A DNA stretch of 63,857 nucleotides, the filler included, from Olpidium bornovanus S191 (taxonomy: Eukaryota; Fungi; Olpidiomycota): assembly GCA_017911155.1 (NCBI GenBank). It is 30 parts of 30 records of this genome, joined end to end, with 100 filler letters (N's around TTAATTAATTAA, not from the genome) between each part and the next. Parts side by side here need not be neighbours in the genome. Positions count along the whole stretch, not along the records: positions 9,671 to 13,478 come from JAEFCI010003635.1; 29 more parts are not named here. One strand, written 5' to 3'. A model generated the notes under the pieces. It worked only from the letters and a program-made list of their open reading frames with translations, had not been told where the DNA came from and searched no databases. The translations under genes and the position numbers were made by a program. Positions within the stretch are counted from its first letter, which is position 1; the number at the start of each line of letters is the position of its first letter. Of the stretch, positions 9,671-13,478 are shown in pieces.

Positions 9671-11727
9671 AACGCCACGGTACCCGTTCATCCCAGCCCG
9701 CAACAACGGCATTTTCCTCACCCTCGACAGCAAACGAATCCACCCTCCTCGACGCCAAGATGCCTTCGCGCAGCTTCCCTGTCGCAGCATGAAGTTCAAT
9801 CGTGGGATATCGCACCTCGACACTTCCCCTGGTAAAGCCAGTGCTTACGCATTGAATCGCTGAGAACGCAAGCCCGCCTGCGACGCTCGGCTTCGGAATT
9901 CCCGGTTGGCGCGCTGCATGATGCGCGGAATGATGCCAACTAGAATTCCGTGGATGTTAACGACAGGAACTGGCCGCAGGGCCACTTGGTCGCCATCGTA
10001 CTGTGCTGACCTCGTCCTTTATCCACGAAAACAGCTCCTCCTGAGTGTCATGATTAATCAAACTGCACATGTGAAATACTACGTCACGCCGAGTTTTCGC
10101 CGGACGGTGGGCACAACTTGTCTGTGGGCCTCGATAGTTCACTTACCTTTTATCACCATCTAAACCGCCCCTGCTGATGAGCCTGTGGGCCTCTCCGAGA
10201 CTTGAGGCTGATTTTGGCGATTTCATGACGCCGGTGAACGTGCGTGGGATGTTGCTATCTTTGGACAATTGGCCTCTTCGGGTTGCGGGCGACCAGGTCA
10301 ACGAGCGCGGCGACCCCCCAATCGTCGTCGTTTGGGGGCCAAGGTCGCCTCCGGGCAGCGACCCTGAATATCTTGGTCGCTGAGTTGACGTCCGCGAAGC
10401 TGGCTGACCGGAAGCGCCCATTGGTGCGGGTGAGACAACAGGACGGTAACATTGCCTCGATGCCTTCGGCAGCTCCCCCGTTAATCCCGCTTCGGTGGCA
10501 GAAGGACTCGCTGGAAGCTGTCCCGGAGGCGAAGGCGGAAAACGGCCAGCGGGCGACTTCTCGGGAACGGCAACAAATACCGGCTCCGTGATGTCTATTG
10601 GTTTTGCTCTTCCTGTCTTGGTCTCCAAATCCAGCAGTCGATTCGCGGCCGAGGAACCGGGACGCACGGAACTTTGGCCGTCTTCCTGCGCAGCAGAACG
10701 TTCTGTCGAATGGGAGGAATGACCAGTTGTCGCAGCAGAGAGCGGCAAATGCTGTTCTACTGTTTCCGATAAATTTGTGCGTGGATGGTCACGTTCGCCG
10801 TGTTCGGCAACAGCTGATATCGCTCCAGAGTCCGCCAGGACGTCACCAGGACGTCTCTGCGGAGTTGCGGTCAGGGCGATAGCGCCCTGAACTGGTCGAC
10901 TAGCTACTGAGGGTTTTGGGCGCTCGCGGATACTACTGTCTCCAACACATCTGTCTGCCGCCGACGACGCATGCTGGTGGCCATTTACGCCGCCAGTTCG
11001 GTCCGCCACCGCGGGCGCCCTAGGCGGCGGCGTTCTTTCCTACGCACCGCGACAGCGAGGTGGAGATGCCTGGCACGGTTATTCACCGAGAGAGCTGGTT
11101 CTGTCGGCGTCCGGGTTGTGCTCGTACTGCAAACGTTACCTTGGAGACACCCTCCGGACGGGAAGCCCGTCGGAAACTCGCGGCGCTGCTGCCCGGCCCG
11201 TCGCGTCCGTCGCCGTGCACGCCTGGTCGAACGCCGCCGCTTCCTCTCGGCCTCTCCAGACAAGCGTTGCCGCCCTCGTCCGAGTCGTGGTCGGGCGGTA
11301 GCGACATTCCGAATGCTGATAAATCCTCACTCCACCTGTGATCTTCACCAGTGCCAATTAAGGCAGGAGCGAAGCCGGCCGCCGGGGAATTTTTAGCGTT
11401 TTGCGTTCCCGCGGGGGGCGTATCAGGCTGGCCCGCAGGGACCGGAAACCGCCCGGAACTGCCGCGGCCGTTGTCACAATGCCTCACGGAGCGAGGGTTA
11501 GCCGGCGCCGACGCGGCGCGGGCGCGCGATTTCACGCTGGCTGCGGGACGCACGGCGGAAGCGGTCGCGCAGCCCGGCGCACGACAGACCGACGGGCTGC
11601 GCGATGCTTGCCGGAGAGACGTCTCCTCGGCCCGGCGGCGCCCAGGCCCAAACGACCTGCCGACACATTTATCGTAACAATGCAAAGCGCGGTGAACACG
11701 CCGCGGTGAAGTTGGTTGGTCAAGCAT
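9671..11727 (-). CDS. Hypothetical, largely disordered multi-exon protein; 3' partial
   Basis: A long S/P/A-rich exon (ORF 10143..11009) ends at a GTAAGT donor and is followed by spliceable exons SLINHDTQEELFSWIKDE and RANREFRSRASQAG. No family motif. Confidence 0.4.
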
Positions 11728-12009
11728 CTAAGTGATGCGAGGAGGGAAAGAGGGAGAGGGAGGGAAAGGGTCCGCGTTCGTCACCGCCGCTTCGGCGTTT
11801 CGCCATCTAAGGATTACCGACCCCGACCGCCCGGCGCCCCCCCGTGCGCCAAACACCCCCCCAACCGCGCCAACAACTTCCGCGGCCTGTAGTCCTTCCT
11901 GTTCGTATTACGCGTGCAGACACTTCCACTTCTGGAACCTGGAACCAAATCTAATCCAGCATCAAATCCAGCATCAAATAAGTTTATTTTCGTTACGCCT
12001 CGCGCTTCG

Positions 12010-12480
12010 ATGCCCTCGCCGCGCCGTCGGCGCCGCCGCTCACGCGGCCTGGGAGGTACTCCCGCCCCGCCTGCAACGACAGACGTGTTGTCTTTTGCGC
12101 CCGCTGTTGCACCGGTCGCGGCTCCTCTGCCTGTTGACGACGCCGTCGCTGTTCCGGCCGTCAACCCTGTCAATGCGACCGTCTCTTCGCTTATCGATGC
12201 CGCCGCCTTTGCTCTCCCCGCGTCACCATCTCTCGGTGCACACATGAGTATAAGCCCTCTACCGGTCACGGTACCATACATCGTGCCTGAACCGGCTGGG
12301 CTCGACGCCAGTTTTCACGCCCCAAACCGTTCGGGCCTGTCTGCTGAGCAAACCGCTGCTGAGCTTATTCTTTGTCAGCAGAAGGAAGCCGGCTTCGCCG
12401 AGTGGCGCGCCTCCACCGTTTGTCGTGTCGGTGAAGACGTCGCGGCCCGTCTGTTCGCTGATGTTGCTCTCGATTCGCGC
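12010..12480 (+). CDS. Orphan A/P-rich ORF, possibly transposon-derived, abutting the copia integrase in antisense
   Basis: MPSPRRRRRRSRG..ELILCQQKEAGFAEW..; many T-ending codons, unlike the host genes. It runs into copia-derived sequence at a CATG (12480-12483). Confidence 0.3.
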
Positions 12481-12483
12481 ATG

Positions 12484-13478
12484 ACGGAGCTTGCAAGGCG
12501 AAGGAGTTGGCCAAGTCGGTCGTGCCTGAGTCTGTCGCATGCTGCAGTTCCAAGGGAAATGGGAGGCGCTTGGGGCGGAAATACTGTTCGAGCTTGGCCG
12601 GGCAGGAAAGATTTGCGTGTGGTTCCCAAGTATTGTCTGTAGGAGCCTATCCTTTCCACTTAATGCGGAAGGAGTAGCCTTGCACAGGATCATAGCGGTG
12701 ATCGGTGATATGGTCGACAACGTAGATGTCATCCTTGTCGGCGTCAAGAGGAATGTCGGGGTCGGCCAGATCAGGCGAGCAGTCGCCGTGCACTGGAGAG
12801 GGTGGCCAGTCGGCGGGATCGTATTGGTGGGATTCGTCGACGGTCACATCATAGCGCTCGAGAATCTCATCGGTGATTGGGTCCCAAAGTCTGTACCCTT
12901 TAGAAGTGTCAGAGTAACCAACAAGAATGAGTTTCTCACCTGCAGGAGACAATTTGGTCTCACGCTGGTCCCGTGGTAAGTGTGAGTAGCAGGTGCTGCC
13001 GAGGATGCGGAAATGAGACCTATCTGGACGACTGTGATGTGCTGGATCAATCTCCGCGATGAGGAGCTTGAAGTTGATTCCAGAATGAGGAGAGTGGTTG
13101 TAAATCTTGACCGTAGCCAACCAGATTTCGGCCCAAAATCTGGAAGGAAGTCTAGTGGCAACGAGAGTTGCCCAGGTGCGTTCTTCCAACGTGCGGTTGA
13201 GGCGTTCGGTGACTCCGTTCTGCTCTGGTGTGCCGCGAATCGTTTGTTGGCGGACGACGCCGGAGTCGACGAGTTCCATGTCATAGGGGCCGGAGCAGTA
13301 TTCTCGGCCCCTGTCAGCGCGGTGTATCTTGAGAATGCGGCCCGTAACATTTTGGAGTAGATTCTGGGTTGCTCGGAATTTCTGTAGGGCTGTGTTGCTA
13401 TCCTTCATTGGAATTGCAAAAAATTTAGCGTAACGGCTACACTGTTCGCCTGAAAGTAATGACATATTTCTCATCATG
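12484..13478 (-). mobile_element. Ty1/copia element A fragment: integrase core, SH3-like domain and chromodomain (degenerate)
   Basis: HRADRGREY, TPEQNGVTERLNRTL and LVGYSDTSKGYRLWDP, then DIYVVDHITDHRYDPVQGYSFRIKWKG*APTDNTWEPHANLSCPAKLEQYF (12730-12578) with an in-frame TAG at 12647-12649. Confidence 0.93.

Follow-up and report, generated by a model that had tools for sequence, protein, structure and literature searches.

In the literature, integration guided by a chromodomain counts as a hallmark of the Ty3/gypsy chromoviruses. These elements (MAGGY, Tf1-like elements, Tcn1, and the plant Del, Reina and CRM groups) have an RVT_1-type RT and an integrase at the end of pol, and a chromodomain is found at the integrase C-terminus, preceded by GPY/F. 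Type I chromodomains of chromoviruses resemble HP1 and have an aromatic cage of three residues. In surveys of LTR elements from fungi and plants, chromodomains come up for gypsy only. Copia-type elements can also direct integration via the C-terminal region of the integrase: Ty5 integrates into heterochromatin through a Sir4-binding motif in this region, and both Ty1 and Ty5 integrases carry targeting determinants at the place that a chromodomain occupies in the elements described below. However, these determinants are short peptides that bind host proteins, not a folded reader of a histone mark. For the chromoviruses, tethering of integration to heterochromatin has been proposed, and other papers, citing Gao et al. 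(2008), describe their chromodomains as guiding new insertions there.

Within Ty1/copia, the CoDi-A elements of diatoms (for example, CoDi2.4 and CoDi3.1 of Phaeodactylum tricornutum) have a putative chromodomain at the integrase C-terminus, and the study that described it stated that other copia elements were not known to have one (Llorens et al. 2009, PMC2774666). There has been little follow-up since; literature on Ty1/copia chromodomains yielded diatom CoDi-A alone, and phrase searches gave nothing further. The initial annotation of the locus studied here spoke of at most sporadic mention of such domains in copia, which was too cautious, as the integrase chromodomain of CoDi-A had been described explicitly in 2009 (PMC2774666). 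A copia lineage of arthropods, CopiaMBD, has a captured host-type chromatin reader adjoining the integrase (de Mendoza et al. 2019, PMC6673714), and this reader was proposed to steer insertions into silenced, repeat-rich DNA (PMC6673714). It differs in that the reader is a methyl-CpG-binding domain instead of a chromodomain, and the lineage is confined to arthropods.

We investigated a locus in a 63,857-nucleotide stretch of joined parts of the Olpidium bornovanus S191 assembly GCA_017911155.1 (hereafter, the window), within the piece that spans 9671–13478. On the minus strand, positions 12494–13478 contain a copia-type integrase remnant, then a linker of 32 aa and, after it, an HP1-like chromodomain. 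The features are listed below in the direction of reading; L004 and L005 are two other Olpidium copies, and P0002 and P0012 are relatives.
13448–13450, minus strand: frameshift, one extra base compared with both paralogues (DNA alignment with L005 and L004; translations)
13037–13478, minus strand: C-terminal part of the integrase catalytic core, cut at the piece edge at 13478, with weak rve and rve_3 Pfam matches
12821–13036, minus strand: copia-type SH3-like integrase C-terminal domain (PF25597 SH3_retrovirus, 82.5 bits, E 2e-23, aa 148–219)
12725–12820, minus strand: acidic, proline-rich linker of 32 aa that joins the SH3-like domain with the chromodomain (translation)
12578–12724, minus strand: HP1-like chromodomain broken by an in-frame stop (PF00385, PDB matches, L005 model)
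12647–12649, minus strand: in-frame TAG at the third aromatic-cage position, aligned with the F of human CBX KWKGF
12494–12577, minus strand: post-chromodomain tail YFRPKRLPFP...TDLANSFAL, homologous to L005, L004, P0002 and P0012
12493–12494, no strand: 3′ truncation breakpoint, where similarity to other copies ends, with no RT or RNase H beyond

A 276-aa ORF (12650–13477, minus strand) opens at the piece edge, and its C-terminal part reads ...GYSDTSKGYRLWDPITDEILERYDVTVDE...DIYVVDHITDHRYDPVQGYSFRIKWKG. As had been remarked of the ORF track, it stops at the TAG inside the domain, and the same minus-strand frame goes on beyond the TAG as APTDNTWEPHANLSCPAKLEQYF / APTDNTWEPHANLSCPAKLEQYFRPKRLPFP.... 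The peptide quoted in the initial annotation was found on the minus strand in a single frame, and the distance of about 30 aa given there between the SH3-like tail and the chromodomain measured 32 aa; the length of this linker differs between aligned relatives. Within the range 12578–12900 to which the fusion had been assigned, only 12578–12724 is chromodomain, the rest being linker and part of the SH3-like domain. When the two halves of the chromodomain were scanned separately, PF00385 (Chromo) scored 16.1 and 18.7 bits, both under the gathering cut-off of 25.1 bits, and the 55-aa stretch joined with X at the TAG scored 52.3 bits (E 5e-14). Sequences in the PDB matched the window chromodomain with E-values down to 2e-10 (phmmer), the best being CBX5, CBX1, CBX3 and Drosophila HP1. 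The proposed fusion of a copia integrase and a chromodomain was thus recovered, with PF25597 at 82.5 bits and Chromo read through the stop, and we regard the observation as confirmed: it is real and far beyond chance. The catalytic core aligns to residues 696–830 of P0002, in and after the rve domain of that protein; the rve and rve_3 matches are weak because the core is truncated by the piece edge.

In intact relatives, the tail after the chromodomain runs on to the RT. Right after the chromodomain helix, at window 12557–12583, there is a basic, proline-rich motif, YF(R/Q)(R/P)(K/R)R(L/P)P(F/I/V)P, which is conserved at aligned positions in P0012, P0007, P0006 and L005 (alignment columns ~170–185). 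This motif could be a nuclear-localization signal, or could lie near an IN/RT protease site.

The aromatic cage had been called complete in the window copy, which did not stand: the copy encodes two of the three cage residues (Y252 and W274), and the cage is incomplete because the TAG occupies the third. The accompanying proposal that the TAG is a mutated Tyr codon was supported. Both L005 (92.6% nucleotide identity) and L004 (90.2%) have a Tyr codon at this position in a gap-free DNA alignment, and relatives carry Y or F there. The cage of L005 is complete (Y, W, Y; KWKGY), and most clade members retain a cage (Y or F, W, Y or F) together with the TWEP motif, those of P0140 and P0006 being degenerate.

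We modeled the fold with AlphaFold from the SH3-like domain, linker and chromodomain of L005 (163 aa) with an alignment of eight relatives. In this model, the SH3-like domain is a β-barrel (pLDDT ~85), the linker is disordered (pLDDT ~50), and the chromodomain, predicted with pLDDT ~90, has strands at 107–116, 120–127 and 136–139 and a helix at 146–156, that is, the three-stranded antiparallel sheet packed on a C-terminal helix that characterizes the chromodomain fold. A Foldseek search of the PDB with the modeled chromodomain retrieved HP1, CBX1 and CBX5 structures with H3K9me2/3 peptides (1kna and 6d07 among them), and superposition on HP1/CBX1 structures gave TM-scores of 0.88–0.89 and rmsd of 1.0–1.2 Å at 36–41% identity. 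Cellular HP1 and CBX1/3/5 are the best matches in both sequence and structure, and have the TWEP..NL.C motif and a Y/W/(Y or F) cage in common with the element. They differ from the Olpidium element, which has neither chromoshadow domain nor hinge and in which the domain lies inside a retrotransposon polyprotein.

An exhaustive HMMER search with the 276-aa ORF gave 22,684 matches, of which the closest were three proteins annotated to Olpidium bornovanus in the same assembly, GCA_017911155.1 (KAG5459893.1, KAG5459819.1 and KAG5462474.1). P0001 was 87% identical to the window ORF, P0003 was also close, and P0032 was more distant. A separate homology search with the window ORF matched two Olpidium proteins only. 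At the nucleotide level, L005 (JAEFCI010006255.1) aligns to window 12494–13478 and L004 to window 12514–13467, with the identities given above, which point to the zoosporic fungus O. bornovanus, or a relative very near to it, as the most likely host. A three-way alignment of these copies showed the following lesions.
Window copy: TAG in place of the Tyr codon of the paralogues; extra base near 13448–13450 with a resulting frameshift
L004: private stop one codon upstream of the window TAG; 1-nt deletion
L005: chromodomain intact (KWKGYAPTDNTWEP); 2-nt deletion; separate stop in the integrase core

By this alignment, the three are independently decaying copies of one family. The intact Chromo of L005 scores 56.5 bits (PF00385), and past the chromodomain L005 enters, with a frameshift, a typical copia RT N-terminus (...KWAYKTKLHPDRSIHKYKARYVTKGYLQRPGIDFEDTWSPV...). 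The dN/dS values between the three copies were 0.29–0.58, which indicates that part of their divergence arose under purifying selection, while the family was active. Across window 12536–13440, transitions at CpG predominated among the substitutions private to one of the three copies (0.092 per site and lineage, whereas other C/G sites had 0.027 and A/T sites 0.015), which suggests 5-methylcytosine deamination of transposon copies in the host genome.

In addition, the GenBank model of L005, KAG5459819.1 (P0003), treats 48 codons (L005 ~732–929) that make up most of the intact chromodomain like an intron and leaves them out. As a result, only SH3_retrovirus and RVT_2 can be seen in the public protein, and the chromodomain of L005 is invisible to annotation-based surveys.

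Olpidium bornovanus also has a second, divergent chromo-copia family, represented by L006 (JAEFCI010002080.1), whose protein identity with P0002 is ~50%; its product, P0032, shares 52% identity with the window ORF. The order in L006 is SH3-like domain, chromodomain and RT, and its chromodomain is frameshifted. On its 2.2-kb contig, the RNase H end of the element is inverted, owing either to rearrangement or to nesting of another copy. A complete, intact copy was not found in Olpidium, all four genomic copies seen being broken.

Intact relatives were taken from public Logan, ENA and JGI metagenomic records. Four of them, P0002 (1600 aa, 56% identity), P0004 (1701 aa), P0007 (1492 aa) and P0018 (1457 aa), share the Pfam order Retrotrans_gag, Pol_BBD, gag_pre-integrs, rve, SH3_retrovirus, Chromo and RVT_2; intact polyproteins with this full copia order plus Chromo thus measure 1457–1701 aa, and P0012 is a fragment. 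Every full-length or RT-bearing match that was scanned has RVT_2 (P0002, P0004, P0007, P0009, P0012, P0018 and P0138). RVT_2 and RNase H lie downstream of the chromodomain in relatives, not in the chromovirus order with the integrase last, and copia RT follows the chromodomain directly in both L005 and L006. The gag_pre-integrs domain was present in the full-length relatives only, the window copy being cut before it. A single-protein query placed a further SH3 and Chromo member, metagenomic contig L009, among 19 mostly chromodomain-less copia loci. Queries of other kinds were unproductive: residues 830–990 of P0002 matched nothing but P0002 itself, a search with a full-length alignment of six clade members returned ordinary copia lacking the chromodomain only, and no long direct repeats were found in the relatives' contigs L001–L003. 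Among the metagenomic loci, L026 (Ga0307388_10038770, ORF 1–1983) has four tandem chromodomain matches and is unrelated to copia.

We built an integrase-only tree from the core and SH3-like columns, excluding chromodomain columns, with 137 rows from the best 150 matches of one search. All 10 of the 10 chromodomain-bearing rows fell in one clade (SH-aLRT 97) of 13 rows, two of which are without the domain and one too short to tell, and the window copy was sister to P0002. The tree is compatible with a single origin of the chromo-copia fusion. The assignment to copia and not gypsy, which the initial annotation had also made, is borne out by the PF25597 tail, by RVT_2 after Chromo in relatives, and by the copia RT after the chromodomain of L005. 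The Pfam comparison that it had suggested gave weak rve in the window, RVT_2 in relatives, and no RT in the window piece. Because the window copy is without RT, RNase H and LTRs, its assignment to Ty1/copia, beyond PF25597, leans on the paralogues and relatives, which support it.

The window copy itself is dead, a decayed relic of about 1 kb of a Ty1/copia element that bears four defects: loss of the 5′ part at the contig edge, a frameshift near 13448, a nonsense codon, and a 3′ truncation at 12494. Upstream of the frameshift, the true integrase frame (HDEKYVITF...) differs from that of the 276-aa ORF, and among contigs of public runs there was a deletion variant, along with loose contig ends, at 13447–13450. 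The blastn alignment to L005 stops at 12494. In the public runs X1–X3, contigs that belong to other copies part from the window at precisely 12494, as loose ends, and a contig of 678 nt from run X1 (X1#3) matches 11939–12616 with two mismatches, bridging the truncation point; the junction is therefore real in the sample. Neither tblastn nor a sensitive profile search (--max) found RT or RNase H in 9671–12600. A faint HDKRW likeness to the RT N-terminus below 12494 was set aside as chance, both searches being empty there. Long direct repeats of the LTR type were not found within the piece, where the element is cut at both ends, and the piece had no Rfam match.

Based on these results, we consider it likely that 12494–13478 on the minus strand is a decayed copia copy from a chromodomain lineage whose ancestors plausibly targeted heterochromatin. 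The polyprotein of this lineage has the order gag, PR, IN, SH3-like domain, linker, Chromo, RT and RH. In functional members, the chromodomain would stay on or next to the integrase C-terminus, or act with the integrase; its Y/W/Y cage would bind methylated H3 tails, most like H3K9me2/3, and the domain would tether the pre-integration complex to heterochromatin, thereby steering new copies away from genes. Ancestral heterochromatin-targeted integration is plausible in view of the sequence and the predicted fold. Depending on where the protease cleaves between IN and RT, the chromodomain could instead remain attached to the N-terminus of RT or come free.

An artificial or accidental juxtaposition deserves attention, as the contigs of the source assembly, a fragmented MAG, are short and the element is truncated close downstream, at 12494: a copia integrase fragment might abut the chromodomain of a host HP1-like gene or of a gypsy chromovirus. 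However, three separate contigs, each with mutations of its own, have this same junction in frame, as do the divergent Olpidium family L006 and, from other samples, at least six polyproteins or contigs that are unrelated, and no GPY/F or RVT_1 signal was found. Because the integrase runs uninterrupted into the chromodomain in three genomic copies, and likewise in six or more independent polyproteins, a chimeric join, which the initial annotation had named as a possible refutation, is effectively refuted, and we assign it a negligible probability. Just as little credence is due to the idea that the integrase of a Ty3/gypsy chromovirus was mistaken for copia. Its appeal is that an integrase chromodomain is the chromovirus hallmark in the literature, but PF25597 and gag_pre-integrs are copia-type domains, and the RT in relatives and in L005 and L006 is RVT_2, downstream of the integrase. 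A host gene in which an integrase–chromodomain fusion was co-opted for a chromatin function is slightly less remote, and still very improbable. X1–X3 contigs cover the region, the same runs hold spliced transcripts of the neighboring gene, and dN/dS between copies is below 1. Against domestication, the window copy is truncated, frameshifted and interrupted by a stop within the domain, stops or indels of their own are present in both paralogues, and there are several copies at 90–93% identity; the neighboring gene is also present unspliced in the same runs, so the coverage may come from DNA or pre-mRNA.

The alternative that carries the most weight accepts a genuine chromo-copia and disputes what its chromodomain did: recruitment of host silencing factors for self-regulation, binding of a methylated non-histone partner, or a role on the RT side once the polyprotein has been processed, rather than the choice of integration sites. 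Cleavage between IN and RT may separate the chromodomain from the integrase, and the cages of P0140 and P0006 are degenerate. On the other hand, most intact members keep the cage and the HP1-like peptide-binding fold, and the position of the domain matches that of the targeting determinants in Ty1 and Ty5 integrases. A parallel doubt was voiced by the authors of CopiaMBD, who noted that cleavage might detach the reader domain from INT (PMC6673714), whereas for the chromodomains of chromoviruses direction of integration to heterochromatin is described in papers that cite Gao et al. (2008). We regard a role other than targeting as unlikely, though well ahead of the alternatives above, and prefer a heterochromatin-targeted copia ancestor.

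Compared with the described systems, the Olpidium clade shares with CoDi-A the copia order (integrase after protease) and a chromodomain at the integrase C-terminus; the hosts differ, one being a diatom and the other a fungus, and the comparison is with the published description of CoDi. Atlas neighbors of P0012 labeled Bacillariophyta score <0.9, a weak lead only. With the gypsy chromoviruses, the clade shares the integrase C-terminal chromodomain and the proposed tethering of integration to heterochromatin, whereas its own chromodomain lies within pol, flanked by the copia SH3-like domain and RVT_2. As a chromodomain in copia was already reported for CoDi-A in 2009, Olpidium is an added case, and possibly the first fungal one. 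We give an even chance to the broader reading in which the Olpidium copies are part of one old chromo-copia lineage, with intact, probably active members elsewhere among eukaryotes; it would be the first documented in Fungi, and would be a distant branch of CoDi-A or have captured an HP1-like domain independently.

The locus is non-functional debris, and its direct biological importance is therefore low; the lineage that it reveals is of moderate interest for transposon biologists. To the earlier report, the present results add a supported copia clade with an HP1-like, cage-bearing chromodomain, two diverged chromo-copia families in an early-diverging fungus, and intact full-length relatives elsewhere. 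If the reading given above is correct, site choice by reading of H3K9 methylation, the chromovirus strategy, would also have evolved in Ty1/copia, with the reader placed between integrase and RT. Whether two LTR superfamilies captured a histone-mark reader convergently or share one capture is now testable.

The rest of the piece contains a spliced gene on the minus strand at window 9671–11401. X1–X3 contigs skip four stretches of it (70, 71, 84 and 100 nt), which read GT..AG, the first and last with the cut one base further right:
9778–9847, minus strand: skipped stretch
9940–10010, minus strand: skipped stretch
10063–10146, minus strand: skipped stretch
11039–11138, minus strand: skipped stretch

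The exons joined as listed leave one frame open over 475 codons, rich in S, P, A, G and R and running off the piece at 9671, and the large exon had no Pfam match. Unspliced forms of the gene occur in the same runs at about one-third of the depth. The flanking ORFs 10146–11009(−), 12010–12639(+), 11086–11727(−) and 11817–12281(−) had no Pfam match; the plus-strand one of these, which extends from its ATG at 12010 to 12642, runs antisense into the chromodomain tail. Read-contig depth was zero across 11449–11940, where GC content is 72%. The poly(A) run X13 contributed no reads, and its library may be devoid of the organism. An AATAAA lies on the minus strand ~40 nt before the end of the 678-nt contig of run X1. 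Finally, low-depth contigs of X2 and X3 skip 73–74 nt within the SH3-like domain (window 12863–12964); the skip at 12891–12963 reads GT..AG on the minus strand, and these skips reflect cryptic splicing in transcripts of the element or else a deletion that some of the copies carry.
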